In this document: positions 5,306-58,650 of the stretch, piece by piece
Numbering within the stretch: the stretch's first letter is position 1
Layout of the letters: each line of letters begins with the position of its first letter
Sequence record: MF360958.1
Strand: one strand, 5' to 3'
Length of the DNA stretch: 64,000 nt
Notes under the pieces: model-generated
Database searches by the model: none
Told to the model about the DNA's origin: nothing
The model's input: the letters and a program-made list of their open reading frames with translations, nothing else
Program-made: the position numbers and the translations under genes

Positions 5306-7168
5306 ATGTCAAATCGAACTAAAGAAGAATTAGAATCTGATTATCAAGCTATTGAGCAAAAGCTGCATGATACTGAAAAAAAGTTAAAAAATTCTGAATA
5401 TGCCAATAGTCGTTATGAAGATACGCTTGACCAAGTTACCACTGAATATACTAACAGTTCTGAAGAATATTTTTTCATGGTTTGTGTATCAGAACTTAAT
5501 AATAAAACACGATCATTGACTAGTGAATTGTTGATGACTTATCCATATGATGATTGGAAGAAATTTCTTATGGATAGTGATGAACAGAAACAACTTTTTA
5601 ACAAGATTATTGAGTCTTATATGAAATTTGTGGAATTTTCTGTACAAAATGTTCCTCAGATTGTAACTTGTTATTATTCCCCATATAGTACTACAAGTGG
5701 TGATGATAATAGAATCAATAACTCGCCTCTTCAAAATCAAGCAATGTATACGCATTTTGCAAATATTGCAGTAAAACTAGTATATAGAAATATTTTTCTT
5801 TCAATTTTCAATATGCTTTCAGAAGATGATCGTGAAATTGTAAAACAAGATGAACATAAGTCAGCAACTATGAATTTTATTAAAAGTATATTTGGAAAGT
5901 TATGTGTAAAAACTATTGATGTGTTTTTGAATAACGATTGCGTTGATGATTTATTCTTTAATCTTGCTCTTTTGAATATAAAGACTAAGAATGTTAGTGA
6001 TAATGAAAACAAAAAATATGATTATAAAAAATCTCTCGAAGGTGTTTTTGAAAAACAAATTGATTTTCTAATAACTCAGTGTCTTTTTGACGATACTGTT
6101 AAAGAAGATTTTTATAAAATAATTTTAACTTATCTTAATCCTCAAAGTAACCATTATGTAGAAAATTTAGTTAAATATATTTCTTGTTCTAATTTTCACA
6201 AAAAATTAAAATTATATATTTCTGTGAAATCTGCTGAGTCTAATATTAAATTTAATAGTAATAATGTATACTTTTTAGAGAATATTGGTAATACAACTTT
6301 TTCTCAATTATATAATATGGGAACTTCTACTCAACAAGAGTTACAGAATGATTTAGATGATGGAATTTATTGTATTAATAAAGTCAAGATTTGTTATATT
6401 TTTATAGATTTAGGACATAGTAAAAATGAAAATAATTTACTTATTAAAGGGCAAATGGACTATCGTTTATTTGACTGCTCCTACATAAACAACTATGAAG
6501 ATTATTATATGAAAATTCATGATTTTCATGATGAATATAGAAAAGTATGTAAAAAACTGAATACAGTAAATCATAAAGATTTTATACTTGATTGTAAGTC
6601 TGATAACGAATCACCCACTGAATTGTTTACATATGCTTTGGATAAATTTAGGTATCGTATCGGACAGGAGACTTCGAAAATGTTTTTTGAAAATATATAT
6701 AACTTTGTTTTTAAAAGTTTTTATTTAATGCTTTATACTTCAAAATTTAAAATGGTTAAAGATTCATTGCCCATGAGGGAGTTTTTCGCTGCATTAAGGA
6801 TTATTACTGATAACAATCAAGGGCAATATGATTTTGATCTTAACACGAGCAAAAAGCAACTATTATTATTCAAAAGTGATTTAAACTATGATGTATATAA
6901 AGATATGACTTTCCCTGAAATCATTTATAATGATATTGTGCGTATCGCCAATGATGTAATTAATTCTCAGTTTAATGGTGTGATTGAAGTAACCAAAAAG
7001 GATAAAGACGAAGATGAGACTAAAGAGCAATATGTAAAAAAAATGAATAGTATGTTTGAGCATTATATCAATCTAATAGAACTATTTACATCAACATTTG
7101 ATATTTATGATAGCGGTGATCTTAAACCACTTCATAACACAACGAAAAAACTGAAGCTTTATTACTAA
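5306..7168 (+). CDS. ~620-aa paralog family member 1 (N-terminal coiled coil)
   Basis: 620 aa; LSEDDREIVKQDEHKSATMNF aligns with LSKKEKELVKEDHHKSSMMKF of 11685..13553. Confidence 0.7.
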   Translation: MSNRTKEELESDYQAIEQKLHDTEKKLKNSEYANSRYEDTLDQVTTEYTNSSEEYFFMVCVSELNNKTRSLTSELLMTYPYDDWKKFLMDSDEQKQLFNKIIESYMKFVEFSVQNVPQIVTCYYSPYSTTSGDDNRINNSPLQNQAMYTHFANIAVKLVYRNIFLSIFNMLSEDDREIVKQDEHKSATMNFIKSIFGKLCVKTIDVFLNNDCVDDLFFNLALLNIKTKNVSDNENKKYDYKKSLEGVFEKQIDFLITQCLFDDTVKEDFYKIILTYLNPQSNHYVENLVKYISCSNFHKKLKLYISVKSAESNIKFNSNNVYFLENIGNTTFSQLYNMGTSTQQELQNDLDDGIYCINKVKICYIFIDLGHSKNENNLLIKGQMDYRLFDCSYINNYEDYYMKIHDFHDEYRKVCKKLNTVNHKDFILDCKSDNESPTELFTYALDKFRYRIGQETSKMFFENIYNFVFKSFYLMLYTSKFKMVKDSLPMREFFAALRIITDNNQGQYDFDLNTSKKQLLLFKSDLNYDVYKDMTFPEIIYNDIVRIANDVINSQFNGVIEVTKKDKDEDETKEQYVKKMNSMFEHYINLIELFTSTFDIYDSGDLKPLHNTTKKLKLYY

Positions 7169-7647
7169 GTTATTGCTTGATGTTTTGAAATGATATCTTT
7201 TATGGCTTGATGTTTTTCCTGAATTGTTTGATCAACTCCGGGATGAAGATCAAGCCTTGTTAAATATTTGTAGGGTAACCAAATATAGTCATTAGTTTCA
7301 TTCTCATTGATAACAATATCATTAAATTCATCTACTACCATTACAAATGAATAATAAATAAATTCATCATCGTCGCTTAGAAAGGTATCAAGAGGATATA
7401 GCTTCACAATCTCGGGGCTACTACCTAATTCTTCCTTTATTTCGCGCTGTAATGCTTCTCCAAAGTTTTCATTTTTGTTAAGCTTACCACCCCAAATACC
7501 CCATTTATATGGATGTGTGCATTTCTTAGAGCGTTGTTGGAGCAAGAACATATCTTTGGACATATCGTATATGAAACAACCAATGCATTTAATCATATTA
7601 CACCTTTTAGCCTGTATGTATGCCGTAGCCACGATCAGATGTGACAA
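7165..7647 (-). CDS. Nudix hydrolase (likely start MIKCIG at 7596)
   Basis: Nudix box WGGKLNKNENFGEALQREIKEELG. Confidence 0.9.
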   Translation of the reverse strand: MSHLIVATAYIQAKRCNMIKCIGCFIYDMSKDMFLLQQRSKKCTHPYKWGIWGGKLNKNENFGEALQREIKEELGSSPEIVKLYPLDTFLSDDDEFIYYSFVMVVDEFNDIVINENETNDYIWLPYKYLTRLDLHPGVDQTIQEKHQAIKDIISKHQAIT

Positions 7648-8371
7648 AGTTTGCTAATTCAGTCTCTAATGCTTCAATTTCGCTTTGAGCTTCTTGTTTT
7701 AGCTCATTACCATTCAGTGTAATACCACCACCGGGCCCTGCAATAGATTGGAATTTGCTACGCGCTTCACCCATTATATACTTAGTACGCGCAATTGTAT
7801 AGGATAAAAGCCAAGGTTTAATATTATAATCATCTAGTAGTTCTTCATCAGTACGATATATATCTGCAAGGATTGTCATGATTTCATCACGAGCCACATT
7901 ATTCAAAATGGTAAGAACTTGTGTAGATGGATTCCAGTAAAATTGAATTCGACTTGCTACAATTTTTTCAAGTTGGTCAATATAATGATATTGCATATGA
8001 ACAGTAGCAATGCTCCCATAGGTCATATTTTGATTTAGAGCGTGCATCATTTGATTCACATACATCATAAGAAATGGGTCCATAGAGTAATCAGTTGCTG
8101 CACTGGAACCTATTGTGTTTCGATAAATTGCTTGTATATCGGCAATATTACTATCGCTCATGTCATATTCTTGTTGATGTTTACCGTATTTGAATATGAT
8201 TGCTTTTTCCTCAGTAGCATTAGCTGCTTTTTGACGATACTCTTTTAGAGCATAATCTAAAGCGAAATCAATATGTTTATTATCAATTTCAAGATCTATA
8301 ATACCTTCACCTAGAGAAAGTCTTACTTCGTTGTAAATTTCTTCTCGACGTTCATTACGTTTTTTAGCCAT
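7607..8371 (-). CDS. neck protein (T4 gp13-like)
   Basis: C-terminal FQSIAGPGGGITLNGNELKQEAQSEIEALE is characteristic of gp13-like neck proteins; late TAAATA upstream. Confidence 0.8.
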   Translation of the reverse strand: MAKKRNERREEIYNEVRLSLGEGIIDLEIDNKHIDFALDYALKEYRQKAANATEEKAIIFKYGKHQQEYDMSDSNIADIQAIYRNTIGSSAATDYSMDPFLMMYVNQMMHALNQNMTYGSIATVHMQYHYIDQLEKIVASRIQFYWNPSTQVLTILNNVARDEIMTILADIYRTDEELLDDYNIKPWLLSYTIARTKYIMGEARSKFQSIAGPGGGITLNGNELKQEAQSEIEALETELANFVTSDRGYGIHTG

Positions 8372-8427
8372 TGTTATATCCTCATAAATAATTATATCTA
8401 AAGGTATTTATTGATAAGAGGTTTATT

Positions 8428-9321
8428 ATGACAACAAAATTTCAACAATCTGTAATGAATAATAATTGGGAAGTTCTTACTGATTCTGGTTATAAAGATG
8501 TTTTAAGTATTCATAAAACAGTAGAATATGATACATGGTATTTAAAAACAAATAATCATTATCTATATTGTGCAGATGATCATATTGTTTTTAATGATAA
8601 TATGTCAGAAATGTTTGTAAAAAATCTTAATATTGGTGATAAAATAATGACTCGTGCTGGTGTTGAAGATGTTGTAGATATTAAGTCACTTAAAAAGTTA
8701 ACGCCTATGTATGATCTTCAGGTTAACACGTATTCACAGAGTTATTATACAAATGGTATTCTAAGTCATAATACAGCGGTAGCGGCACTGTATTTACTAT
8801 GGTATGCTATGTTTATTCCTGATACTAAAATTCTTGTTACATCCTATATTGCATCAGGCGCGGATGAAATTCTTGAACGTATTCAGTATGCTTATGAAGA
8901 ATGTCCGCAATTTATAAAAGCGGGTATAACCACATGGTCAACTAAAAAAATTGTATTTGATAATAAATCAAGTATTATGTCGCGTGCCACTACAGAAAAT
9001 ACCGGTCGAGGATTGTCTATTAGTCTTTTATATTGTTTGGATGGTGAAACTACGGTAAAACTTCGTGATAAAGAATCGGGAGAAGTTAAAGAAGAAACAT
9101 TATCTGGCCTATATAATGAACTTGAAGGTTATTATATTGATGAAATGCGTAAAACTCATTTTGTTCGTATTTTCTTTGATAAAGGATATTACTTAGATGT
9201 ACCAGAGCATCAATCTTTACTTGTAAATGATATCAAAACAACTATTGAAAATATTCATATGGATGATAAAATTTTAATTAATCAAAGCTATTACACTGTA
9301 AAAGATATTGACTACATTTGA
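8428..9321 (+). CDS. terL: terminase large subunit internal fragment flanked by a split-intein C-half (aa 1-115) and a split-intein N-half (aa 203-297)
   Basis: aa 1-115 ends MYDLQV...YYTNGILSHN|T (intein blocks F/G). aa 116-202 TAVAALYLLWYAMF...RIQYAYEECP...TTENTGRGLSISLLY is the gp17 segment between Walker A and Walker B. aa 203 starts CLDGETTV (intein block A). Confidence 0.9.
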   Translation: MTTKFQQSVMNNNWEVLTDSGYKDVLSIHKTVEYDTWYLKTNNHYLYCADDHIVFNDNMSEMFVKNLNIGDKIMTRAGVEDVVDIKSLKKLTPMYDLQVNTYSQSYYTNGILSHNTAVAALYLLWYAMFIPDTKILVTSYIASGADEILERIQYAYEECPQFIKAGITTWSTKKIVFDNKSSIMSRATTENTGRGLSISLLYCLDGETTVKLRDKESGEVKEETLSGLYNELEGYYIDEMRKTHFVRIFFDKGYYLDVPEHQSLLVNDIKTTIENIHMDDKILINQSYYTVKDIDYI

Positions 9322-9333: not shown

Positions 9334-9858
9334 TTGGAATACTATCGGCTTATCACCTATAATCATGATGATGTTGAATTTTATAACAATATAGAATTTA
9401 TTGATGAATTCATTGAAATAACAAAAAATTCCATGGTGATCTATGATCCTGAATCGTGGAATTGTACTCCTGCGAATATGAAACGTAATACTAAAAATGT
9501 AATTGTAATAAGCCCTCATTGTGTTACAAGTGAAGATGATTTAAAAGATGTAGATATTATTGATCATGTTATAATAATGCCAAATGATTCATTTGTATTC
9601 ATAGAAAATAAAATTAATTATATATTTAATAATGAAAATAATTTAGAAAGTATTTTTATTTTTGGATATTCTTATCTAAAACATCTTTTCAGCTTCCATA
9701 TTCATCGAGTTTATCTTATTTCAAATGAAAGAACATGTAATAGTGATTTTAATATTCTTAAAATAAGTTTATTAGATACATATTACAGTTTTAAGAATGT
9801 GTTATCGTATTCATTAAACAGCGATACAAAACTTACAATGTATGATAGTATGTCTTGA
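9334..9858 (+). CDS. degenerate dihydrofolate-reductase-like protein
   Basis: FIEITKNSMVIYDPESWNCTP...RNTKNVIVIS...IFIFG...RVYLI follows the DHFR secondary-structure pattern but lacks GRKT and GG. Confidence 0.45.
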   Translation: MEYYRLITYNHDDVEFYNNIEFIDEFIEITKNSMVIYDPESWNCTPANMKRNTKNVIVISPHCVTSEDDLKDVDIIDHVIIMPNDSFVFIENKINYIFNNENNLESIFIFGYSYLKHLFSFHIHRVYLISNERTCNSDFNILKISLLDTYYSFKNVLSYSLNSDTKLTMYDSMS

Positions 9859-11684: not shown

Positions 11685-13553
11685 ATGAGCAAATATGAAG
11701 AAAATAGTGAAAAGGATGAACAGATATCACATTTAAAAGATGAAATTTCTCATCTTGAAAGTGTTTTAGATACTTCTAATGAACAAATAGATGAATTGTC
11801 TAATACATTAGATGAAAAAACAAATATAATTAATGAATATAATGATGATATTGAATATTACGAATCTTCAATTAATGATGTTTGTGATTATTATGAAAAT
11901 GATATTTTAAGTTACTTTAATTATCAAATATATTATAAAGTAAAGAGTAGGCTTAAAAGTTTTTATATGTCATTAGTATTGGGGGAAGAAGATTCAAAAA
12001 GTATTGATTACTTCACATCATTATCATATAAAACATATTTAAAAGAATGTCTTATTGATTGTTATAAAGATATTATAGATGAGTTAATACCTAATATACC
12101 ACAAAATGTAGTACTTGAATCATGTTCAAAAAGTAATGAAAGGTACGCCTATTTTGATAATTCAGGATTATTAGAAGACACATTCTTTTTTGATTTAACT
12201 AATTTTTATATTAATGAAATATACCGTTACGTTATTATCCCGTTGTATGGGATGCTTTCTAAAAAAGAAAAAGAATTAGTAAAAGAAGATCATCATAAAT
12301 CATCAATGATGAAGTTTTTATTTCATATTCAAGGACATTGTTTTATTAGTCTTTTTGATCAATTAGTATCTAATTATGAAGTATGTGATGTTATAGGGAA
12401 AAAATCTAAATTTATATATAATAATTATCTTTATTACAATAATGAAACTCTTAGAACTTTTTATATAGCAAATCTCTCATTGATTTTAAAATATTGCAGC
12501 ATTCATTATGAGATTAATTCAACATATTTTGAATTATTAAACAAATATTTTTATAAAGTTAATGAATCTTATTTGTTACAAAATGTAATTGAAGCTATTA
12601 AAGATAATTTATCTAAAGTTAATCAAATTAATCATATAGTAACTATGATCGGTATAAAAAATTATTTGGGATTTAGTGTTTATAATATAAAATTTGAAAA
12701 TTATTATGATTCCTGTAGATTAAATTCACATTATATTAATTTATACGATGATTTTGATGAAAAAATAATGGTTGAATTATTTAATGATTATAACATTAAG
12801 GATTGTTTTTATTATAATAACTTAAAATATATTACAGAGAACAGTGATAAATTATTTGATATATTTTCAGGAAAATCTAAAGATGTTTCTATGGCCTTTA
12901 GAAAAAAAGGGACAAAGAATGAAAATGAGATTTTAGATATATCTAAAGAAAATGAAACAACTAAAAATGTTTTATATCATGTAAATCAATATGTTCAAAA
13001 TTATACGTCGCAATCTACAATATATTATTTGTGGTGTTGTTCTATAAAAGCAACCTATCTACTAACAAGTAATCTTCAACCATGTAAAATTATTTGGGAA
13101 CAACAATTTACAAATAGTAATAAGTATTTACTACCTTATGTCATGAAAACGGAATATAGTAATAACTGGTTATCAACTAAGCTTCTCAATATTCCCCAAT
13201 TTTTAGTTGTGTTGAAAACAATTATTAAACAACAGGATAATATTGAAAATCCTTTCTTTAATGATAATAGTTGTGATTTAAATAAAAATTATAATGATTT
13301 CAATCATGATGCGTATTACGGTATAATAAATGATATTGAAGATTATATTAATACGATTATTATGAATTGTGAAAAAATATTAAAAGATAATACATATGAA
13401 TTAGACAAATCTTCAATTAATCTTAATGTCGAATTAGATCATATTAAGTATGCCATGTATACTCTTGAATCGATTCTTGAATGTTTTGATGATACTAAAA
13501 CAGACCTGATAAATCTTAATAAAAAGATCAATAAATTAAAAATTAAGGTATAG
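11685..13553 (+). CDS. ~620-aa paralog family member 2
   Basis: 622 aa, N-terminal coiled coil, motif shared with 5306..7168. Confidence 0.7.
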   Translation: MSKYEENSEKDEQISHLKDEISHLESVLDTSNEQIDELSNTLDEKTNIINEYNDDIEYYESSINDVCDYYENDILSYFNYQIYYKVKSRLKSFYMSLVLGEEDSKSIDYFTSLSYKTYLKECLIDCYKDIIDELIPNIPQNVVLESCSKSNERYAYFDNSGLLEDTFFFDLTNFYINEIYRYVIIPLYGMLSKKEKELVKEDHHKSSMMKFLFHIQGHCFISLFDQLVSNYEVCDVIGKKSKFIYNNYLYYNNETLRTFYIANLSLILKYCSIHYEINSTYFELLNKYFYKVNESYLLQNVIEAIKDNLSKVNQINHIVTMIGIKNYLGFSVYNIKFENYYDSCRLNSHYINLYDDFDEKIMVELFNDYNIKDCFYYNNLKYITENSDKLFDIFSGKSKDVSMAFRKKGTKNENEILDISKENETTKNVLYHVNQYVQNYTSQSTIYYLWCCSIKATYLLTSNLQPCKIIWEQQFTNSNKYLLPYVMKTEYSNNWLSTKLLNIPQFLVVLKTIIKQQDNIENPFFNDNSCDLNKNYNDFNHDAYYGIINDIEDYINTIIMNCEKILKDNTYELDKSSINLNVELDHIKYAMYTLESILECFDDTKTDLINLNKKINKLKIKV

Positions 13554-19756: not shown

Positions 19757-21628
19757 ATGAGTGAAGATAATCAATATATTTTAAATTCATTAGAAGAACA
19801 AATAATGGATCTAAAATCATTTATTCAAGATAATAGTTATAATATTAGTACATTACAGGAAAAAGTGAATTATGTAGAAAATAATATAATTGGTGAATTG
19901 TATTCAATGATAAACATGCATCTTTCATGGTTAGGAACAAAACATACTGAATATAATGAAAATCAATTAAAACATATGGATTATCAAAATATACACAATG
20001 CTATCGATAATAAGAAAAATGATTTAATTGGTGATATTAATGAAATTAAACAAGTTTACAAAGATGCTGGTAATAGTGATATTGTCATCACATATATAAT
20101 GAATAGTTCATTAGAAGAATTTGGTAATTTTTGTTATGATTTATTAGATTCTAATATAAAAAATATAATGCGATACGTTACAAATACATTGGTACATTCA
20201 GGGGATGATAATTCTAATCTAAGAAATATCGGTAATATTTTTAATAAAGATATCGTAGAATTTTTGGATAATTTTTATTCAATGAATATTTTAAAAACCA
20301 TTTTTGAAAATTATTTAGAGATTATCTTCACAACATATACAGATTCACAAGACAGTGATAACTATTTGGATAAGTTACTTTCAAGTTTGAATATTGATGA
20401 TGAAAAGGATCTTTCCCAAAAATTTTTTGAAGACAATTATGTGTATGAACAGGTAATGATATGGGTTTATGAATTAGACGCTCATAACAGACTATTAGAT
20501 AATTATTCATTATTTAAACCTCTACAAAATCTATTTCAAATTTTTATGGATAAGTTAATCTATGCGTGTAATTTATTTATATATAGTTTTTCAGATTCGA
20601 GTTGGAAAAATATGATTGTTGATTTTGAAAGAAAACTAATCATGTCTTATTCAATTGTTTTTGTTAATGCTTTTTCTAAAATTAATTATAATGTTTTAAA
20701 ATTTTGTATGAAAGATATTGATGAGGTAGATATTAATAATCCACACGAATTCATATTTAATAGTACTTTATATGATGGATCTTATAAAAGTAACGTTAAT
20801 TGTAGTGAAAGATATTTTCCATCTATTTTAAATCACTTCAATTTCCATACTGTAAAATATAGATATATTGACACTATGAATAATGTTAAGCATTTATATT
20901 CTTATGATAACTCAACCCATGTTAGTGAAAGAAAAGCTATGGAAGTACAATATATATCAAGATTAATTCTACTGTTTAAATATGTTTCGTTTTTCGATAG
21001 CCAAGATATTAAACAGTTTGTTGATAAACTAATGCGTTTTCAATCAATCGAAGGGGATCTAGACAATAGTTTAGAAAAAAGTGATAATTTAAGTAACTTT
21101 GTATATGAGAAAATGTTTACAGATGTCATTAAAAATTTAATACATACACAGTATCGTTTCAAAACAGTATTTGAACTTAATGAAAGTAATAGAATAGGTT
21201 TAAATATTTGGAGAACACTTCCAAACAGTGTTAAAATGAAAGTTATCCCTGATCGTAAAATTGAGCCTATACTATCAGAAACGATTATTTTAAAAATGTA
21301 TAAACTATCACAAGAATCTATCGAGGATAGCTGTGAACGCATAAAAGATATTACTAACACAGAGCCATGCGGTAATTTATATGATGAAAGCGTATTGAAT
21401 GAAAATGTTCCAAAATTGCGATTAGAATTTAAGGATAATAACGATGTAGTTTATATTATAACAATGCCAACATATTTTGATAAGTATTTGTTTATAGATA
21501 AAGAACAACTTCAAGATAGTAATGGTTCTTACAGTTTTTCACCACATTATGTAATGAAGAATAATATAATGGATTATATGTGTAACATTTATTCTAGTGT
21601 TAATAATTATATTAAATTGTTTGAATAA
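19757..21628 (+). CDS. ~620-aa paralog family member 3 (more divergent)
   Basis: 623 aa, N-terminal coiled coil, helical pattern similar to 5306 and 11685. Confidence 0.55.
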   Translation: MSEDNQYILNSLEEQIMDLKSFIQDNSYNISTLQEKVNYVENNIIGELYSMINMHLSWLGTKHTEYNENQLKHMDYQNIHNAIDNKKNDLIGDINEIKQVYKDAGNSDIVITYIMNSSLEEFGNFCYDLLDSNIKNIMRYVTNTLVHSGDDNSNLRNIGNIFNKDIVEFLDNFYSMNILKTIFENYLEIIFTTYTDSQDSDNYLDKLLSSLNIDDEKDLSQKFFEDNYVYEQVMIWVYELDAHNRLLDNYSLFKPLQNLFQIFMDKLIYACNLFIYSFSDSSWKNMIVDFERKLIMSYSIVFVNAFSKINYNVLKFCMKDIDEVDINNPHEFIFNSTLYDGSYKSNVNCSERYFPSILNHFNFHTVKYRYIDTMNNVKHLYSYDNSTHVSERKAMEVQYISRLILLFKYVSFFDSQDIKQFVDKLMRFQSIEGDLDNSLEKSDNLSNFVYEKMFTDVIKNLIHTQYRFKTVFELNESNRIGLNIWRTLPNSVKMKVIPDRKIEPILSETIILKMYKLSQESIEDSCERIKDITNTEPCGNLYDESVLNENVPKLRLEFKDNNDVVYIITMPTYFDKYLFIDKEQLQDSNGSYSFSPHYVMKNNIMDYMCNIYSSVNNYIKLFE

Positions 21629-48753: not shown

Positions 48754-48831
48754 GGAACTGTAACTCAACTGGTAGAGTACCGGCCTGTCTAGTCGGAAGT
48801 TTTGGGGGTTCGAATCCCCTCAGTTCCGCCA
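48754..48831 (+). tRNA. tRNA-Asp(GUC)
   Basis: GGAACTG/CAGTTCC acceptor, loop CTGTCTA, G73, CCA. Confidence 0.9.
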
Positions 48832-48842
48832 AACAATACAAT

Positions 48843-48918
48843 GGTACTCATAGCTTAGTGACTAAAGCACTCGGTTGTGACCCGAGTAGACGTAGGTTTG
48901 AATCCTACTGAGTACCCC
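48843..48918 (+). tRNA. tRNA-His(GUG)
   Basis: G-1:C73, GTACTCA/TGAGTAC, loop TTGTGAC; CCA incomplete (CCT). Confidence 0.85.
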
Positions 48919-48936
48919 TCTAAATACTTAAAATGT

Positions 48937-49013
48937 GGCAAGGTAGTTCAGTTGGCAAGAACGCATCACTCATAATGATGAGGTCGGGAGTTCAAATCTC
49001 CCCCTTGCCACCA
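48937..49013 (+). tRNA. tRNA-Met/Ile2(CAU)
   Basis: GGCAAGG/CCTTGCC, loop CTCATAA, ACCA. Confidence 0.9.
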
Positions 49014-49063
49014 ACAAACAAAAAAGATATAATATAGTCAATACAAATTGAGGTTGATTAAGT

Positions 49064-49504
49064 ATGAACGATTGGGTGACACATCAAACACATGATGAAC
49101 CAAAAGATCTAGCACCGGATCAAATTATTGAAACAACATGGCCTAAGAATTTTAAGCCAGAATTAAAAGGTGATAATAAAACACAATATATTTCAGTATT
49201 CCGTTTAATTTGGCTTCCGGGTATTGAATATCGTGTTGTAAAAGATAAAGACGGTATTGGTTATTGTAACCATGAAGGTCTTAAACAATCAACACAGTAT
49301 GTTGCAACACAACAATGTGTTATTGGTGGAGAGCGAGCTTTGCAATTTAGTTCAAAGCCCGAATATGTAAAACCGTCATTGATTGCTCCCTATAAATGGG
49401 ACAATGGAGAAAATAACGGGCGCGTTGATGCGCCTCAAAATAAAATCAAACCCGGAGATTGTAAAGATTCAATTCTCCGAGTTTGGTGGAGCGAAGAAGT
49501 TTAA
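49064..49504 (+). CDS. hypothetical protein
   Basis: 146-aa ORF with GAGG RBS inside the tRNA operon. Confidence 0.6.
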   Translation: MNDWVTHQTHDEPKDLAPDQIIETTWPKNFKPELKGDNKTQYISVFRLIWLPGIEYRVVKDKDGIGYCNHEGLKQSTQYVATQQCVIGGERALQFSSKPEYVKPSLIAPYKWDNGENNGRVDAPQNKIKPGDCKDSILRVWWSEEV

Positions 49505-49507
49505 TAC

Positions 49508-49584
<77 letters not shown>

Positions 49585-49607
49585 AATTAAAAATTATAGG
49601 AAAAATT

Positions 49608-49781
49608 ATGGTTTACAATAGAGAACAAGCTTACGAAGAACTTTATGATCCAGATAGTGAACAACGTTCTGATATGGCTCATGAGCTTATTGAGCACATG
49701 GAATCCATCAAGCGAGCATATAGAAGTGGTGATATGGATGAGCTTGAAGACCTCATTGAAGAATGGGGTGGAAATTCTTAA
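49608..49781 (+). CDS. small hypothetical protein (57 aa, not in the ORF track)
   Basis: MVYNREQAYEELYDPDSEQRSDMAHELIEH...WGGNS*, with AGGA RBS. Confidence 0.55.
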   Translation: MVYNREQAYEELYDPDSEQRSDMAHELIEHMESIKRAYRSGDMDELEDLIEEWGGNS

Positions 49782-50005
49782 CGGTTAAACTTATGAAAAT
49801 TAAACATATATGCATTTTTCATAAATGGAAAACATATACAGATCATTTACCAATTGTTTATAAACAATGTAAAAAATGTAATAGGATAAAAATAGTTTCT
49901 ATTACTCCTATGGGACATCGACCATACGATTTAAAAGTACATATAGGAAAATGATCGTTAACTGTTGACAAAGGATAAATAAAACGTTAAGATAATATAA
50001 ACAGT

Positions 50006-50081
50006 TGCAGGGTAGAGCAGTTGGTAGCTCATCGGGTTCATAACCCGAAGGTCGGCGGTTCGAGTCCGCCCCCTGCCTCCA
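50006..50081 (+). tRNA. initiator tRNA-fMet(CAU)
   Basis: 1:72 mismatch, three G-C pairs in the anticodon stem (TCGGG/CCCGA), loop TTCATAA, CCA. Confidence 0.9.
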
Positions 50082-50088
50082 AATTAAA

Positions 50089-50178
50089 GGATGTCGCTGT
50101 AGTGATAGTGTTCCGGGCACATGGGGACGACTACGCCGGTTGTAAGCCGGTCCTCCAAGGAATCCTAGGCATCCACCA
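50089..50178 (+). ncRNA. non-canonical tRNA-like RNA with GUA (Tyr) anticodon-like loop
   Basis: GGATGTC/GGCATCC+ACCA; GCCGG-TTGTAAG-CCGGT; no canonical T-arm. Confidence 0.5.
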
Positions 50179-50188
50179 TTTAAACAAT

Positions 50189-50275
50189 GGTCTGAATAGC
50201 GCGTAAGTCTTGCAATGGGTGATCCTCATTCTAGCGTCGAAAAGGTATCCGGGGAAGGGCCGGAAGGACAAGCCA
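50189..50275 (+). ncRNA. candidate structured RNA ending in GCCA
   Basis: GC-rich island; hairpins AATG...CATT and TCCGG/CCGGA; 3' CCA; sits at tRNA-like spacing in the operon. Confidence 0.4.
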
Positions 50276-50289
50276 AACACTAATAGAGG

Positions 50290-50505
50290 TTGTTTAAAAT
50301 GTCAAAATATTTTATTATTGAAAATAAAGTAAACAATGCATATTTTTCCCACTATAAATTTTCAGATAGTGGTGAAGAAAAAACAGAAGTTTTTGTGAAA
50401 GGTAAAACCCTTGCTCTAAAACTTGAGTATGATAAAGCTCAAAAACTTAGTGAAGAATTAAATCAAGTAGAAAATATTGATACACAGGTTGTGAACGCAC
50501 TTTAG
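50290..50505 (+). CDS. hypothetical protein
   Basis: 71-aa ORF with GAGG RBS. Confidence 0.55.
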   Translation: MFKMSKYFIIENKVNNAYFSHYKFSDSGEEKTEVFVKGKTLALKLEYDKAQKLSEELNQVENIDTQVVNAL

Positions 50506-50514
50506 CTAAGTGTA

Positions 50515-50589
50515 GTCAGCAGCTAGTTTAACTGGGTAGAACGTCCGCCATAGGTGGAAGATACAAGTTCGAATCTTGTACTGTTGACA
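50515..50589 (+). pseudogene. degenerate tRNA (shortened anticodon loop CATAG, no CCA)
   Basis: GTCAGCA/TGTTGAC acceptor, D-arm, TACAAG-TTCGAAT-CTTGTA T-arm; TCCGC/GTGGA stem with a 5-nt loop. Confidence 0.6.
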
Positions 50590-50728
50590 TTTTTAAAAAG
50601 CATAGATGGATCAGGGTTAAAATCCTTGAGTGGTAATGTGAGAAATCACATTCCGGCTGCGGTCGTGAGCCCAATACGCTCATACATTTTTGAAACTGTC
50701 TGTGCTTTTTAATTTTGAAAAGAATAAT

Positions 50729-50850
50729 TGGGTAGTAGCTCAGATGGTAGAAGCAGCGCGCTGTGGGCCTTATGGGTAATATCAGGTTCAACTCCTGAAA
50801 GGCCAAAAGTAACGCGCAGGTCGCAGGTTCGAGCCCTGCCTACCCAGCCA
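50729..50850 (+). tRNA. tRNA-Asn(GUU) with a 45-nt insertion (50765-50809) in the anticodon
   Basis: TGGGTAG/CTACCCA, U1-A72 and G73 (Asn-type), canonical D/T arms and CCA. Removing 50765-50809 gives GCGCG-CTGTTAA-CGCGC. Confidence 0.75.
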
Positions 50851-50853
50851 TAC

Positions 50854-50883
50854 AAAAAGCCACCTACATAGGTGGCTTTTTTA
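50854..50883 (+). terminator. terminator ending tRNA operon 1
   Basis: AAAAAGCCACCT-ACAT-AGGTGGCTTTTTT. Confidence 0.85.
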
Positions 50884-53765
50884 TTGCACACATTAGCCCA
50901 CGCCTGTATAATGTTATCTATGACTCCAAAGAAAAGACAGAGAAATTTACAGTTAGATAAAAGTTTCCGAATTGGGCTAACCGTTCCTTATGATTTCGTT
51001 GTCCAAGTATCATCAGCTCGCCATTATACAATGAAAGAATATTCTGAACTAATACATAATGAAAAACATTATCGAATTCAAAAACATATAGATAGATTAA
51101 AATTTAGATTATACCGTGAATTTAGTTTACTTTTTAAACAATTAAAACTCAATTATTATTGGTATGATGTTGATATTATCTATGGAGATGAAATATCTTC
51201 TATGAATAAATTGACACATCTTACAAATTTTAAATATGATTTTCACTATTTAATTACTTTTAAATTTTCTCAACATGATTTGAATCGTTTAAAATTAGTC
51301 CATCAAGATTTTTATGACGTACTTATTGATGACACTAGGGACGCTATAAAGTTTCAGGATATGTTTGGATATTTGATTAAAAATTAGAGTAAAATTATGA
51401 CAAAGTACAGAAAACATAACCATAACAGACATAATGAATTTAATGTATCAATAACTAATATAGGGTTCAATCAACGTATCGGTTATAATGAAGATGAAGT
51501 GTTTAAAGAAAACTTTTCATTTGGATTAGAATTTGCTAAAAATAAAAACAGAGAAATAGCTGAACGCTGTGAAAGACTTGTAAGATTTCAACTTTATAAA
51601 GAGTTTATCAAACGTTTACAAGACAATAATATTAAAAGGTATTGGTTTGATATTACTTCAAGACATTCATATATGACAACTTATCTTTATATGGATGATA
51701 ATGATTTTGTAACATTAACTATATTTATCACATTTCAGATAACATTAAAAATTAATCAACATGATACTAATCGTTTGAAGTTATCTGATCCTGAATTTTA
51801 TGATTTGTTATGGGAACAGAACAGAATTCGTAATACAATAACACAAGAGTATCCTTCTTTAGACGTTCTTATAGAAAATAGAAAAACAAAATCATGACCA
51901 ATAAAAGAAGAAACAGATTATATTTTGAAAATGAATTCAACATTTCTCTTTATCAATTGTATGATGTTGTACAGATTGATTCTAAAAAGAGTTATAAAAG
52001 TATAAAAGACATTAGACATCATAATGATAAAATTCTTTATGATGTGTTAAACGATGTAAAGAAAAATTTATATCGTAAAATGATTAAACGATTTAAAGAA
52101 TCTGGTTTAAAACATTATTGGATTGATATAACTATGAATGCCAGTGATCAAGGTATTCATGAAGAATTACAAACAAAGAACAAACATCACCAACAAGAAA
52201 TGCATATAGTAACGTTTGATTTTTTTTATATTATTCATTTTAGAATTTCTCAACAAGATATTAATCGGTTAAAAATAACAGATGAAGAATTTTTTGATAT
52301 GTTAAATGATGAAAATGTAGATTTGTTTGAAAAAATATTCTGTTACACTATATCTAATTGATAAGTGAATTTTTATGACTGAAAAAAGAAGAGTAAACGT
52401 TTTATATAATAAATCGCATCGTATTGATATTGACCCAATTGGTTTTTATATTTTTACGGATCATCTCAACGATGACTGCTTAACATATAGTGGTGTCAAA
52501 CAATATAATGATAATCTTCTTGATCGTGTCTATAAAAATGTGAAGCGAGTATGTTACCGATATTTTATTACTAAGTTTAGAGAGAATAATATAAAAACAT
52601 ATTGGATGAATGTAAGTATTAGTATTGTTTATAATGATGTTGAACGAGATAGTTATAACAGAAGTGGTATGTATCCATATATATTAGAAGCTCAAATATA
52701 TATTTTCACAACACAACATGATTTTAATCGTTTAAAATTAACGGACTATTCATTATGTAATATTCTTAACAATTTAGATACGGCTGAACTTAATGATAAA
52801 AGTATAGAATCAATAAAAATCGAGTTATAAACTATGACACATCAAAGAAAAACTGATCCTAATTTATCCAAAGAGTTTCTAATTAGACCATTACCGCTTA
52901 TATTTTATTACTATTATGCTGATAATAGTGTAGTAAATTATGAAAACTTAAAAGATGACATATTCAATACTGAGCGTATGGTTAAAAGAAAATGCTATCG
53001 ATATTTCATTTATAAATTTAAAGAAAATGGAATAAAATCATATTGGATGAATGTAAGTATTAATTCAACATGTCATAATCTTTCCAGTGATTTTATAGAT
53101 TCAATAGTAGATATTGGTACAATAAGTACAATAAGTGAGCGTAAAGGTATTATCTATGATTGCGAGTTAAACATCAGAATAACTGTTTTATTCTCACAAC
53201 ATGGACTTAATCGTTTAAAAATATGCAATAACCAGCTTCATGACATCATCAATAACAAACATAATTCTCATATTAATAAACTACTTAACGAATGGTTTAC
53301 AATAAGTAAGAGTCAATTATGACTGAGCACAGAAAGAATAATCTTCAGAAAACTAATAATTATAACTTGGAATTCTTAATAGTAGAAGATATTGTATTTT
53401 ATAATGAATCAAGATTATATTGGGGAGAAGATTATGAAAAAGTTGTTCAATCAAATAAGGATATGTTTGAGTCAATTGATCAACGTGTTAAAAACACAGT
53501 TTACAAACAGATAGGTAAATTATTTTTCAATAATATTAGAAAAAGCAATTATTGGTTTTATGTTTCGTTAGAGATTATAAAAGGTCCGTTATCAAATATA
53601 TATGATAATAATCCTAATATAATAGTACGATGTTATTTAGCATTTACAGTATATTTATACATTTCAGATCATGGTATGAAAAAATTAAAACTTATAGATC
53701 AAATTATAGGTAATATCATTGAAGATGAAAATGGTGATAGACTTGAATATATTTTAGGTTTTTAG
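50872..53765 (+). CDS. tandem array of six paralogous ~150-170-aa proteins (50872, 51397, 51894, 52375, 52834, 53319)
   Basis: All have an MTxxR(K/R) start (first member likely at 50920) and share K.(L/C)YR.F...F, YW.(D/N)(I/V) and a C-terminal (S/T/N)(Q/D)(H/Q)(D/G).(N/K)(R/K)LK(L/I). Confidence 0.8.
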
Positions 53766-53901
53766 TATTGTATTAGTAACTATAATCAAATGGTTATTAT
53801 ATGACAATTAATAGAAAAACGTTTCATGTTTATAAACTAAGTTCACCTTATGAATATGAAAACAATTATTTAAGAATTTTCTAATACTACGATAGATACA
53901 T

Positions 53902-55452
53902 ATGACATATGAATTTTGGAAACGTGTAAGAGATTACGCACAACGTAAAATGAAACAAGAATATGGCCATGGTGATCTAAAATGTCCCAACTGTAAACGT
54001 TGGACTTATGAACTTGGTGGTTGCGTAACGATGTATCAATATGATAAACATAATGATATAATGGTTTGTAAACAATGTGGTTATGAAAGTATGTGGTTTA
54101 TGGGAGCAGCAGTACCCATATCTAACAACAATTATGAGTATCCTACTAAAGATACCGATCCTCATTAAAACTGGATGGATAAATTATGAAACTACTAGAT
54201 AAAATGAAAAACATTTTAAAAATTCATGATAGAAAATATGACTACTATGTTCATTGTCCATGTTGCCATCGTATCGAATCTTCCAAATCTATTATGATTA
54301 AAAATGTTGCACGATGCTCCAACTGTGGTGCATTTTTTGATATACATTTTGCTAAAAGATTCATTAAAGATGACTATGGTGATATGACCGATGCTCGCAA
54401 AAGGGTATTAGAAAGAAAAAGAAATTTGAAAAAGAATTGGGGTCATGGTCATAATGTTAGAAAATGAAAGAATGAAACATACCCATAATAGTATTACTAA
54501 AATGCATACAACTTTATGCTTGATGCATTCAGAGATATTAGAGTATGATCATTATGATCATTATGATATAGTTACTATATTTACAGATCAAAAACAAATC
54601 TCTAAACAATCTGAAATTTTAGATGAATGTTTAGAATCATTTTTCAGAACAAACTATATTATTTCAATTATGGATACTAAATCAGAAACATTATTCCATA
54701 ATGAAATTCCTGAAACGTTCAGTGATATTAGTTTAATATACAACGAACCAATAACTATATACATTGCAGATATCTTTCCTGATAAAAAGACTTTTCATTT
54801 GTATAAATTACAGAATTATGAGATATTTGAAAAGCGATACAAACGTTATTTTAACTAATTGGATCTAATGACTTACTAGAAATTTGAATAAAATATATGC
54901 TTAAATCTAACTGTCCTATAGAAAATATCAATACTAGTACCCAAGTAAGTATTTCATTAATATATATTAATGAAATATTAAATTTTAAATATCATTGGAC
55001 CTATATTTTAAACGTATTTAAAGATGACACTTTTATATCAGAACAATCTCGAATAATAGATGAATGTTGTGGATTGGCAAAAATTAAACGATTTGATACT
55101 TAATAATTATTATTCTTGACAATAGTGTTAACAATCTTTATAATTGTCTATAGAATTTATTAAAAGAGGTTGTAAAATGCTTGGTAAATATTCACCTACT
55201 ATTTCAGGATGGTATAGCAAAGATCAAAATTGGTTTGAAAAGAATGGTGGTGGTTTTGATAATGGTTATAATCCAAACAGCGATCTAGACAATGATGGCT
55301 ATGACAGCTATGGTTACACAAGCTCAGATTCTTTTGAAGATTATGATCGTGAAGGATTTTACGAAAGAGATTATTGGTCCAATAAAGGTGAAGAACGTTA
55401 CGAACAAATTGAAAGAATCTGGTGGCGTAAGCCTTTGCCTTATGAAAAATAA
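53902..55452 (+). CDS. five small hypothetical proteins (53902 and 54186 zinc-ribbon, 54445, 54897, 55144)
   Basis: CPNC/CKQC and CPCC/CSNC motifs in the first two. Confidence 0.5.
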
Positions 55453-55467
55453 CTTTTCAAAAAGGTA

Positions 55468-55596
55468 TTGACAGAAAGACTATAAATAACTATACTGGAA
55501 CACAGTTAAACAAATTAAACCAAAAACTTGATCTGTATTCGCCACAAGCGAATACTACCGCAAGGTACGATGGAGAGTGGTTCACATCGACTTTTT
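55468..55596 (+). ncRNA. promoter plus candidate three-hairpin sRNA
   Basis: TTGACA-N17-TATACT (55468-96) with embedded TATAAATA; hairpins GTATTCGC/GCGAATAC, TACC-GCAA-GGTA and CGATG/CATCG, then a T-tract. Confidence 0.55.
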
Positions 55597-55693
55597 AAAA
55601 ATTTACGGTTTTTAAAGTATTTTTTGAAAACTGTATAAATAAAATCAACAAGTCATTATTGACAAAAAACAATTAACGATTAGAATAATTATT

Positions 55694-55825
55694 ATGATTA
55701 ACGCAAGTACTACAAACATCGCTAAAAGTATGATCGGTAAAGCTGCCAAAGTTAGCTTCAAAGGTGGCTTTGTGTGGGCGTTTAGCTTTAAAAAAGCGAG
55801 CGGACAGCGAGGGTTTTTGGAATAG
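55694..55825 (+). CDS. attenuator leader peptide 2 (43 aa; 6 Lys, 6 Ala, 5 Ser-AGY, 5 Gly, 5 Phe, 2 Val, 1 Trp); not in the ORF track
   Basis: MINASTTNIAKSMIGKAAKVSFKGGFVWAFSFKKASGQRGFLE*; ATG lies 7 nt after the -10 of TTGACA-N16-TAGAAT (55659-86). Confidence 0.8.
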   Translation: MINASTTNIAKSMIGKAAKVSFKGGFVWAFSFKKASGQRGFLE

Positions 55826-55890
55826 TGAATGAAGTGTAAACCAGCATTCAAAATAATTCCAGAAACCCTTCCAAGTCGGAAGGGTTTTTT
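55809..55890 (+). promoter_or_regulatory. attenuator 2: antiterminator/terminator switch
   Basis: GAGGGTTTTTGGAAT (55809-23) pairs with ATTCCAGAAACCCTT (55856-70), competing with AAACCCTTCC-AAGTC-GGAAGGGTTTTTT (55863-90). Confidence 0.85.
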
Positions 55891-55922
55891 AGTTTAGGAA
55901 TAATAAAATTTAGAGAATATTT

Positions 55923-55998
55923 GGGGATATAACTCAACTAGTAGAGTACATGGCTTTTAACCATGCTGTTCAGGGTGCAAGTCCTTGTATCCCCACCA
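55923..55998 (+). tRNA. tRNA-Lys(UUU)
   Basis: GGGGATA/TATCCCC, loop CTTTTAA, ACCA. Confidence 0.9.
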
Positions 55999-56004
55999 AA
56001 TTTA

Positions 56005-56083
56005 GGAAGGATAGCTCTAATTTGCGTAGAGCAGAGGATTGAAAATTCTCGTGTTGGGAGTTCGAATCTCTCTCTCCTTCCAC
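56005..56083 (+). tRNA. tRNA-Phe(GAA)
   Basis: GGAAGGA/TCCTTCC, loop TTGAAAA, ACCA. Confidence 0.9.
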
Positions 56084-56263
56084 CAAATTTAAAAGGATTA
56101 AAAATATGAGTAATAAAGAAAATATCGCATATAGTGTAGAAAATGAAGGTCTGAAAAGAAGATGAAAAATGGGATAATGGTGAGCTAAGAAATGATGAAC
56201 GCTTTGTGAAAGTTGCTGATAAACAAACCGAAGAAGCTCTTGAACAAGCATTGAAAAAATAAA

Positions 56264-56340
56264 GCCGGATTAGCTTAATTGGTAAAGCGGCGGACTCCAA
56301 ACCCGCGTCTAACGTGGTTCGAAACCATGATCCGGTGCCA
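56264..56340 (+). tRNA. tRNA-Trp(CCA)
   Basis: GCCGGAT/ATCCGGT, loop CTCCAAA, G73, CCA. Confidence 0.9.
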
Positions 56341-56361
56341 AATTTATAAAGGTGATTAACA

Positions 56362-56679
56362 TTGAAACGACTTTATCATATGTATCGAAATTTAAATTCA
56401 AAGTGTTGATCCGTTAAACATAGAGGAAAAGTTATAGGTCATCATGATTCTATTGTTTTGAAAAATTGCGAATTTAGAGTTAGTGAAAAAGGTCGTCAAA
56501 GAGTTTTAAAAGAAAAAGTTAAAAATGTTCATGCTTATATTGCAGCACAAACACATGAAGAATTAGATGATGCCATTGATAAATGTAACAAAGTAGAGCT
56601 TACTTATAATCCATATAAATATTCAACATTTGTGATTAAGGAAACAGGAGAACCAATTTATCATTGTGATCCATATTAG
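56362..56679 (+). pseudogene. phage hypothetical gene with in-frame TGA (56407-09)
   Basis: KRLYHMYRNLNSKC*SVKHRGKVIGH...CEFRVSEKGRQRVLKEKVKNVHAYI; same frame on both sides of the TGA. Confidence 0.6.
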
Positions 56680-56751
56680 CTAAAGATGATGGTAAAATCT
56701 ATAAAATTCGTTATTGACATAAAACAAATTATTTATTATAATATTTAAATA

Positions 56752-58422
56752 GTGATCAAGAGGAATTTAGTAATGTATAAAATTATGACCAAAGACGAAC
56801 GTTATGTGATTATTGTGGAAGAAAAAAGTGCAGTAAATGAATACTATGTTTTTGAGACTCAAGATCTCATCGTAGAAGACAATATGGAAAAAGAAGCATC
56901 AGATTTTTATAATAAAATGCTGAAAGAAGATCAGAAACCATCTATTTATATGAGTGTTAAATGGGATGGTTGTGCAAATATGGATGCGAAAGAAGATAAT
57001 GTGTTGATTCATTTTTGTGAACAATCGCATATCGATTCATTTTATGGTATGCTGTCAACATGTTACAAAGATGCTGAAAAGCGTTTTGATTTTAACAATA
57101 TGTTCAACTAATAGTGGAGTAAATAGTGATGAAAGTTAAAGCGATTGATACAGAAACAAATCGTAGTGATCGTCCCGGAAAGCCTGATGGTATTACGGAA
57201 GGACACGTTTACGAAGTTGTTCAAATCAAATCTTTTTTCCATAATAATCGTAAGATGCAGATGGATCAGTACCGGATTTATAATGATTATGGAAAACTGA
57301 CTAATCATTCACAATACCGTTTTGAAGTTGTTGATGATTCAAAACCTGAACCGTTGGTTAAGTCTTTCAACAGGCTTACTAGTGATGTAAGGGTTGAAAA
57401 TCGAGAACTCAAAGAGAAAAATGAAAAGCTGGAAAATTTGGTTGAGTACTATAGAAAACTTTTAAGTGTTGAATAAAAAGGTTGATTTTTAATAGTAATT
57501 ATTGTTATAATAAACATTGTTGAGATATAGGAGATTTAGTATGAATATGAATGGTCTATTTAAATTGGTTGCTATTACAATGACTTTCGTATTTGTAGTT
57601 GGTTGTAAGTATGATGCTCATGCCTTTTCGGCTGAAGTTATTGAAATTGGTGATTGTGTGTATGATGGCCCTTATACATGTCGGGTTAAAGTCAAGCATG
57701 AACAAACGAAACTTGATGATGAACATAAGACAGACGATGACATTATGTATGTTGAAGTTTGGGGTACGGTCATGAAAGGGCAAACCATCTATCGTCTGTG
57801 CTGGTTTGAATCATCTGAAAAAGAAAAAAGAATGTGTTTTGTTCCATTCAGAACATCCGTACCAAATGGTTATGAACTTCGCGATTAGGAGATTTAAAAT
57901 GAGTAATAAATCGAAATATATTGAAGATCTTGAAAGCATTCGTGATCAACTTCGTCAAGAGCGTGAAGAACATTTTAAAAACATGTCTGATCCACGTAAA
58001 GGAAAAGATAAAGAATGGACTGAAGTTGAAAAGTCCAATCAACGTTATCATGATGCTGTAGAACAATCATATGCAGAGTATTATAAAAGATATGGCGATC
58101 CTGATAACGAACAACGGTAAAATATAAGATAATTAAAGGTGGTTAGCTCAGTTGGGAGAGCGCTGGTTTTACATACCGGAGGCCACAGGTTCAAACCCTG
58201 TACCACCTACCAGTATATGTATGAAAAATAATGATTGATCTTATTAAAAGCTTAATCAAAGATTGGAAGAATAAAAGATTGTATAGTGATCCAAGAAAAC
58301 TTCACTATGCACAGTTAAGAGAACATAATAAAGAAAGGGGTGTTGAGCATCCTTGTGATTGGGACTATACTGTTCCATCATTAGATGATATGATTAGAGA
58401 GTATCGTGACAAAGGTTATTAA
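56752..58422 (+). CDS. hypothetical proteins interleaved with tRNAs (56752, 57126, 57517, ~57900..58120, 58231)
   Basis: ORF track with GGAG RBSs. Confidence 0.55.
58137..58212 (+). tRNA. tRNA-Val(UAC)
   Basis: AGGTGGT/ACCACCT, loop TTTACAT, ACCA. Confidence 0.9.
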
Positions 58423-58558
58423 AGATTATGTTTAATACGAAAATAAAAGAAAATTTTTCATTTGCTTTTCTTTGCACGGTATTGATTATTTTTATAGGTT
58501 TTCCTTAACAGCATATGGTTTATGTTTTCTTTATTAGGAATTAAACAAAACAATTTTT

Positions 58559-58650
58559 AGTGGGGTGGTCGAGCGGTCTAAGACGCTGGATTGCTAATCC
58601 AGTGATCCGTTGTTACGGGTCCGAGGGTTCGAATCCCTCTCCCACTGCCA
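58559..58650 (+). tRNA. tRNA-Ser(GCU)
   Basis: AGTGGGG/TCCCACT, loop TTGCTAA, long variable arm, GCCA. Confidence 0.9.

Follow-up and report, generated by a model that had tools for sequence, protein, structure and literature searches.

Gene 267 of Salicola phage SCTP-2 raises the question of how a phage can make a terminase large subunit (TerL) when the gene carrying that annotation encodes a middle segment of the enzyme enclosed by intein sequences. SCTP-2 is a halophilic jumbo phage of the T4 superfamily from an Italian solar saltern, with a genome of 440,001 bp, and the stretch analysed here (the window) is the 64 kb at positions 248001-312000 of its record MF360958.1. The open reading frame (ORF) of gene 267 is a 100% match to positions 256428-257321 of the record (plus strand), is deposited as 'terminase large subunit' and matches PHROG 5989 and PHROG 36964, both terminase large subunit. 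A preliminary description of the window had read this ORF as a C-terminal intein half (IntC) of 115 amino acids (aa) ending SHN|T, 87 aa of TerL and an N-terminal intein half (IntN) starting CLDG, that is, as a middle piece between halves of two different split inteins and one of at least three pieces. We conclude, with a probability of roughly 0.8, that the sole TerL of SCTP-2 is assembled from three separate precursors by two trans-splicing reactions and one cis-splicing reaction. The elements of gene 267, whose product is gp267, are as follows (window positions).

8428-9321, plus strand: gene 267 (ASV44282.1), from the ORF list; putative middle TerL precursor of 297 aa in the order IntC1-extein-IntN2.
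8428-8772, plus strand: IntC1, the IntC of intein 1, aa 1-115 of gp267; block B is CADDH (H52) and the end is SHN (GILSHN).
8773-9033, plus strand: extein, aa 116-202 of gp267, equivalent to residues 88-174 of spliced TerL and to T167-Y253 of T4 gp17.
9034-9132, plus strand: core of IntN2, the IntN of intein 2, aa 203-235 of gp267; block A (Cys1) hairpin and helix, starting CLDG.
9148-9315, plus strand: tail domain of IntN2, aa 241-296 of gp267; conserved beta domain.

The whole of IntN2 covers aa 203-297 of gp267 (95 aa). Pfam gave sub-threshold HINT matches only for the gp267 ORF, and PHROGs, structure and the T4 alignment were needed instead. Residues 116-202 align to T4 gp17 (phmmer E=6e-9), and the extein superposes on the ATPase domain of gp17 with a root-mean-square deviation of 1.2-1.3 Å over 86 columns at 32% identity (Foldseek). 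An AlphaFold2 model of gp267, built from an alignment of 53 homologues (mean identity 50%), has a mean predicted local distance difference test score (pLDDT) of 79.8 and consists of four folded units with low-confidence linkers between them; intein structures match this model with Foldseek E-values down to 1.7e-5 and show the HINT fold. Across the same 53 homologues H52, H114, N115 and C203 are invariant, and D50 and T116 are at least 90% conserved. The proposed division of the ORF is therefore borne out by the T4 alignment, by Foldseek and by conservation.

The two splice sites fall where the preliminary description had put them, inside Walker A and just before the acidic residues of Walker B. 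At site 1, N115|T116 maps to K166|T167 of T4 gp17, inside Walker A (GK|T). At site 2, Y202|C203 maps to Y253|I254, immediately before the Walker B residues D255 and E256 (LLY|CDE). The extein thus spans from the Walker A Thr to the strand ahead of the Walker B Asp and the catalytic Glu. Within the length range searched, 545 middle-piece relatives were found in a large protein collection; the best 120 were analysed, and the middle extein is 87 aa long in most of these. In intein-free relatives the middle extein segment (E2) directly abuts the first and third (E1 and E3), precisely at the SCTP-2 junctions. Compared with two relatives at 72% and 55% identity, the extein is the best-kept part (94% and 68%), ahead of IntC1 (65% and 51%) and IntN2 (60% and 49%).

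Where, then, is the rest of the enzyme? The preliminary description had found no partner in the window and held the pieces to be dispersed. The whole SCTP-2 record contains two further genes annotated as large terminase, both outside the window, at distances of 38 kb and 172 kb from gene 267 (record positions).

429356-429748, minus strand: gene 534, 130 aa; TerL 1-87 ending RQLGK, followed by a 43-aa Cys-starting IntN (IntN1); 172 kb from gene 267.
215993-218077, minus strand: gene 224, 694 aa; 38 kb from gene 267.

The three terL genes are spread over more than 200 kb on both strands. Gene 534 is the partner that had been predicted for the N-terminal side, an ORF ending RQxGK with a short IntN beginning with Cys. 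Gene 224 encodes, in this order, a 112-aa IntC (IntC2) ending VSQ, 24 aa beginning CDEFAF (TerL 175-198), a cis intein of 225 aa and TerL 199-531. The last extein is 333 aa long and starts TGGK, and the Terminase_6C nuclease domain occupies aa 485-656 of gp224; a Pfam scan of gp224 found Terminase_6C and an Intein_splicing domain. For this C-terminal partner an IntC ending in HN and followed by (C/S/T)DE had been expected: CDE is there, but the intein ends in Gln (VSQ) in place of HN. The third, cis-splicing intein is an addition to the earlier reading; its site (site 3) lies 10 residues ahead of the IITTTP motif. It covers aa 137-361 of gp224 (CLAPG...LGSN|T, block B TPDH) and carries a roughly 90-aa insert of unassigned nature between its splicing lobes. 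The closest relative, P0122, has this cis intein as well (49% identity), and it is absent from the C-pieces of the relatives assigned below to class S.

When the four extein segments were joined by script, a TerL of 531 aa was obtained that is 45% identical to the TerL of Atu_ph07 over 519 columns and aligns with the TerLs of Atu_ph07 and LIMEstone1 with zero gaps at every junction. The features of a T4 gp17-type enzyme (Walker A, Walker B with its Glu, nuclease) are united only after this in-silico splicing, since each gene by itself lacks some of them. Searched with tblastn, the whole 440-kb genome yielded every TerL segment exactly once and no intact terL. In the preliminary description, missing partner ORFs and an intact terL elsewhere would have marked gene 267 as a relic; neither holds. 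Each of the three junctions falls within or beside an ATPase motif, so the ATPase can form only once all three inteins have left. We infer that splicing and pairing would proceed as follows. Gp534 would contribute TerL 1-87 with IntN1, gp267 IntC1, TerL 88-174 and IntN2, and gp224 the remainder; IntN1 (43 aa) would dock on IntC1 (115 aa) and IntN2 on IntC2 (112 aa), rebuilding two HINT domains, and two trans-splicing reactions and one cis-splicing reaction would then yield a gp17-type TerL of 531 aa.

Could the three pieces be relics or a product of misassembly, with another enzyme packaging the DNA? Among the 120 relatives, those with an IntN2 of 95-106 aa (class L, about 40) were distinguished from those with an IntN2 of 30-45 aa (class S, more than 60). 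About 40 metagenomic relatives have the architecture of SCTP-2 together with its gp13/NUDIX synteny. Genes for gp13 and NUDIX proteins adjoin the middle piece on class-L contigs of 72% and 55% identity, as they do in SCTP-2, and no other TerL segment occurs within 10 kb of this piece. For the closest relative, the C-piece was found on a separate contig of equal coverage from the same sample, and at one class-L locus the N-piece adjoins the middle piece on the opposite strand. The N- and C-pieces of relatives keep GK|C, [TS]xxH and N/Q|CDE. Since architecture and synteny are repeated in relatives, the dispersed layout is conserved and is no assembly error. Nothing but the unusual layout speaks for relics or misassembly, a barely credible alternative given that the genome has no other TerL-like sequence, that independent metagenome assemblies show the same architecture and synteny, that the catalytic residues are invariant and that every piece has an intact ORF, a ribosome-binding site and a promoter-like motif.

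Assembly from three precursors also has a plausible history. On three class-S contigs (250-335 kb) the N-, middle and C-pieces follow one another collinearly in about 5 kb. Large ORFs separate the pieces, and a Vsr-like FWH motif is present in one of these ORFs. A tree inferred from IntC1 and extein alone places class L in one clade (support 100/99) that appears in all bootstrap trees and is nested among class S. The ancestral state is likely the fractured-gene layout of class S: a terL fractured twice, with homing-endonuclease-like ORFs between its pieces, would probably have been the starting point, its pieces would have dispersed later, and about 56 IntC2 codons would have been duplicated onto the end of IntN2 in the dispersed lineage. 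In SCTP-2 itself the terL pieces have no flanking endonuclease gene, are not adjacent and are not on the same strand. Most of 80 relatives from IMG/VR have an uninterrupted terL with empty sites; a scan of IMG/VR with gp267 returned mostly intein-free relatives and no member of class L. A word-index protein search for the partners gave 2 matches to gp224 and 6 to gp534, too few for an analysis of covariation between intein halves.

The same sites are occupied differently in other TerLs. Site 1 holds a contiguous intein of the same family in TerLs of Ackermannviridae (LIMEstone1, VP-1), and Atu_ph07 has this intein broken at the same atypical point, with its halves in two neighbouring genes. 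A further group of relatives ('other', P0089-P0120) has no intein 2 and ends in a short Cys-starting IntN after REH. (REH.|C), so that at least three TerL sites are found in atypically split form. Several separate observations concern these variants. Alternative three-piece TerLs, in the 'other' group, use different combinations of sites. P0051 and P0090 are identical over IntC1 and extein, with split intein 2 present in one and absent from the other (a polymorphism). In the class-S contig L100 an extra 300-aa gene (L100:9084-9986) lies between the N- and middle pieces and encodes a second E2 that runs into residues 2-79 of E3 with no intein 2; it may be an alternative or duplicated cassette. 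In VP-1 (L011:3479-6821) the C-part of TerL runs into a long non-TerL tail, in which GIY-YIG-endonuclease-like motifs were seen by eye, and the gene that follows ('terminase like family protein') opens with a short IntC (VVSHN|CSFLG), a fractured terL at yet another site. An IS605 OrfB/Cas12f-like TnpB gene (L094:17907-19187) lies about 7 kb from the middle piece on an SCTP-2-like metagenomic contig; it could be relevant to the rearrangement of pieces.

To which kind of intein do the two split inteins belong? Intein 1 combines the 43-aa IntN1 of gene 534 with the 115-aa IntC1 of gene 267, a short IntN and a long IntC, in keeping with the likeness to atypically split TerL inteins proposed in the preliminary description. 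For the N-terminal unit of the gp267 model, Foldseek matched the VidaL, Cat (atypical split site) and gp41-1 inteins, with VidaL and Cat on top, and CatC matches IntC1 by sequence (E=7e-4). IntC2 had no match among the characterised TerL inteins at E up to 10, and short IntN queries against PDB chains gave uninformative output. The IntN1 of gp534 and of its relatives begins with Cys, directly after GK. IntN1 and IntN2 are 44% identical (about 32 aligned positions) and IntC1 and IntC2 33%, and these sequences identify the two split inteins as paralogues of the atypically split kind. Another gene of the record carries related elements: gene 204 (record 202685-204655), annotated 'hypothetical protein', encodes a homologue of UvsX/RecA that contains two contiguous mini-inteins, the first within the P-loop (GDSG|C...SHN|SGKS) and the second at ISGG|C...SHN|SGQ, and the C-part of the P-loop intein is 35% identical to IntC1. 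Gene 204 was considered as another fractured gene and rejected, as its UvsX is contiguous with two cis inteins.

Intein 2 differs from intein 1 at its end and in its IntN. The 112-aa IntC2 of SCTP-2 has the block B CTTDH and ends VSQ|C, without the terminal Asn and with Ser in the place of the penultimate His. Among its relatives [TS]xxH is kept, Gln or Asn alternate as the last residue and CDE always follows; the terminal Gln recurs in P0121, L100 and L019. IntC2 measures 110-114 aa in class L and class S alike. Because IntC2 has the same length in both classes and brings its own block B, 30-45 aa of IntN2 suffice to complete the fold, and the 95 aa of IntN2 in SCTP-2 are explained by an added tail. 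In AlphaFold2 models the core of IntN2 is a strand-strand-helix unit that corresponds to the entire IntN2 of class S, and the tail is modelled with confidence (pLDDT about 90). All of the top 43 Foldseek matches of IntN2 modelled alone are HINT domains, with modest E-values.

An exhaustive HMMER search of 1.8 billion representatives found no contiguous intein that contains the tail, which occurs only in class-L middle pieces and fragments; its origin was therefore tested by profile comparison. Using hhalign, the tail profile was aligned to residues 31-86 of the IntC2 profile over 56 gapless columns (probability 94.8%, P=5.4e-8). IntC1 was rejected as the source, since it gave a weaker match (P=5.8e-4), and the reversed-sequence controls gave P=0.43 and 0.009. 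This comparison and the tree identify the tail (about 56-57 aa) as a derived, degenerate duplicate of IntC2 31-86 that has lost the block-B His and was gained once. The preliminary description had instead seen a 95-aa IntN with a variant block B, VPEH. This claim does not stand. The His of VPEH is unconserved (only the Glu is kept) and lies one residue before the column opposite the IntC2 block-B His, and the tail residue that faces that His in the profile alignment is Gln; IntN2 is a short IntN extended by a degenerate copy of the N-lobe of its partner.

The tail may be a retained remnant, or it may, by analogy, resemble the cages of engineered intein zymogens. That it is a neutral leftover of duplication or rearrangement, folding but playing no role in splicing, with intein 2 a plain atypically split intein, is a tentative yet real possibility: class S manages with 30-45 aa of IntN2 and an IntC2 of 110-114 aa, and the tail has lost the block-B His, has a single origin and is found nowhere else. 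On the other hand, its length, its confidently predicted fold and its near-invariant positions (E58, K68 and I92) have been kept, with whole IntN2 at 95-106 aa in about 40 clusters down to 32-38% identity, and a 57-aa extension of an essential precursor, if it had no use, should tend to decay or shorten. The more specific idea that the tail is a natural intramolecular cage or chaperone, occupying IntN2 until the true partner displaces it, is in our view rather unlikely. If it were true, the middle precursor would be kept soluble and IntN2 kept from mis-pairing with the IntC1 of the same chain (cyclisation of the extein), the order or timing of terminase maturation would perhaps be set, and the caged or conditional split inteins of the laboratory would have a natural counterpart, in what would be the first natural system in the literature searched to need two orthogonal trans-splicing reactions. 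An assembly-timing switch, also raised in the preliminary description, is speculation.

Are the three precursors made at the same time? Two signals were located upstream of gene 267 in the window.

8383-8390, plus strand: CATAAATA, a T4-late-promoter-like motif, 45 nt upstream of the gene 267 ATG.
8416-8421, plus strand: AAGAGG, ribosome-binding site, 6 nt upstream of the ATG.

The motif [C/T]ATAAATA (CATAAATA or TATAAATA) precedes the portal gene and each of the three terL pieces by 33-45 nt, and the chance of finding it at three out of three terL pieces is about 4e-7 given its genome-wide frequency. Genes 534 and 224 have GAGG and GAGGG, respectively, at an equal distance from the start. In addition, a T4-like late sigma factor has been reported for SCTP-2 (PMC6102473). 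The shared motif and ribosome-binding sites, together with this sigma factor, make late co-expression plausible, and we infer from these signals that the three terL pieces are probably made together late in infection. A scan for sigma-70 promoters showed no enrichment (23 sites against 19.6 expected).

Several points weigh against assembly by splicing. The case for it is built on sequence and models throughout, and the promoters are assigned by motif only. A terminal Gln, with Ser in place of the penultimate His, tends to slow the last splicing step; Gln-terminated inteins can splice. The surplus tail of IntN2 could hinder docking. Given the identities of 44% and 33% between the intein halves, cross-pairing is possible, including cyclisation of the 87-aa extein, and the acidic character of all four intein pieces leaves no obvious steering by charge. 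Two alternatives draw on these points. Intein 2 might be non-splicing in SCTP-2, its halves holding gp267 and gp224 together non-covalently so that the terminase works as a complex that retains the intein domain, as the lack of both Asn and penultimate His at the VSQ end of IntC2 would suggest; but Cys1, the block B TTDH and Cys+1 are all kept, the recurrence of Gln alongside Asn in relatives is what is expected of a tolerated catalytic variant, and ATPase activity is unlikely if about 200 aa of intein separate the Walker B strand from its Asp-Glu. We therefore regard a non-splicing intein 2 as improbable. Still less probable is that gp267 mainly reacts with itself, IntN2 complementing IntC1, either in cis or from one copy to another, to cyclise or polymerise the 87-aa extein with no productive part in TerL. 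Although the order IntC-extein-IntN is that of engineered cyclisation and the two IntN parts are alike, the extein is an indispensable TerL segment that exists in a single copy and is the most conserved part of the protein, the +1 residues differ between the sites (Thr at site 1, Cys at site 2), and the IntC-extein-IntN arrangement is widespread.

The preliminary description had placed gene 267 between a divergent neck gene and a DHFR-like gene. The upstream neighbour is the following.

7607-8371, minus strand: gene 266, T4 gp13-type head-tail adaptor, divergent from gene 267 (PHROG 211, E=5.9e-38).

Gene 266 forms part of the conserved synteny context and lies outside the intein system. The DHFR-like identification of the other neighbour, gene 268 (window 9334-9858, plus strand), is unsupported, with no Pfam match at E up to 0.01 and no PHROG match at E up to 0.001; a 172-aa gene occupies its position in the closest relative. 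Elsewhere on the plus strand of the window, ORFs at 5306-7168 and 11685-13553 encode distant paralogues of about 620 aa with coiled-coil-like N-termini (26.5% identity over 113 aa, E=2e-10), and a third ORF of 623 aa at 19757-21628 has no detectable kinship to the two. Positions 48754-61187 (plus strand) hold 15 tRNA genes (Asp, His, Met x2, Ile, Tyr, Lys, Phe, Trp, Val, Ser x2, Gly, Glu and Thr), including an unusual tRNA-Tyr call with the anticodon ATA at 50517-50588. The cluster is interspersed with many very small ORFs, and the deposited feature table shows only coding sequences there.

Why does such an arrangement matter? Split inteins are central to protein ligation, and the joining of three segments now relies on hand-picked orthogonal pairs. 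SCTP-2 would offer a natural, presumably essential three-segment ligation with related, atypically split inteins and peptide-sized IntN parts, in which cross-reactivity between the pairs must have been solved by evolution, and dozens of natural variants are there to be mined. The partner-derived tail of IntN2 may be a sign that trans-splicing is regulated or chaperoned in nature. Fractured genes, furthermore, can be fractured more than once and then scattered over a genome. Automated annotation, terL phylogeny and the prediction of packaging type will mis-handle such genomes; the SCTP-2 record lists three 'terminase large subunit' genes.

How does the SCTP-2 terminase compare with what is known? 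The papers that name SCTP-2 do not mention its terminase; a PolB mini-intein has been noted for this phage in the literature. In the open-access literature we found no natural gene cut by two split inteins, three-segment trans-splicing being described there as engineered only, and no IntN carrying a copy of its partner. A fractured gp17-like terminase with an intein broken at an unusual point, the 122-aa C part of which lacks motif N1 only, was described by Dassa et al. (2009; PMC2677866), whose fractured genes consist of an N-part with IntN, a free-standing homing endonuclease gene and an IntC with the C-part, all on one strand. Class S matches this layout twice in one terL. By contrast, the SCTP-2 pieces are far apart and on different strands with no adjoining endonuclease, and the 2009 survey dealt with genes in two pieces. 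GOS-TerL (37/115 aa, Ser1/Cys+1), AceL-TerL (25/104 aa, Cys1/Cys+1) and the engineered consensus Cat-TerL (PMC11766414; PDB 6dsl) likewise have a gp17-type host, an IntN of 25-37 aa with block A only and an IntC of 104-122 aa with blocks B, F and G, and intein 1 of SCTP-2 is alike. These inteins are described as single splits of two pieces, whereas SCTP-2 has two such inteins in one protein, and they lack the extra domain of IntN2. The published Cys+1 of GOS-TerL and AceL-TerL corresponds to site 2 of SCTP-2, yet sequence similarity is detectable only for IntC1, at site 1. Closest among the phage TerLs compared is the extein of Atu_ph07 (45%), whose TerL (gp110 and gp109) shares the intein family and the GK|T site of SCTP-2 intein 1, split 42/148 aa; it differs in being encoded by two adjacent genes, in Ser1 and in having sites 2 and 3 free of inteins, and in LIMEstone1 and VP-1 the intein is unsplit.

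Engineered systems offer the nearest parallels to the three-piece arrangement. Tandem trans-splicing (PMC7210297, PMC12707363) joins three segments through an IntC-extein-IntN middle and two pairs that do not cross-react, as proposed for SCTP-2, but these are laboratory constructs with unrelated inteins, whereas SCTP-2 is natural and presumably essential and its inteins are paralogous. Caged split inteins (Gramespacher et al., 2017, as summarised in PMC11766414) combine one half of an intein with part of the complementary half in a single fusion, which recalls the homology of the IntN2 tail to IntC2 31-86; according to that summary the engineered cages block association until a protease removes them, and the likeness of the natural tail to them lies in this homology. 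SCTP-2 extends two known kinds, the fractured genes and the atypically split TerL inteins, and three features of it stand out: the dispersal of the gene in three pieces, the presence in one essential enzyme of two paralogous split inteins as well as a cis intein, and the tail that one half has taken from its partner.

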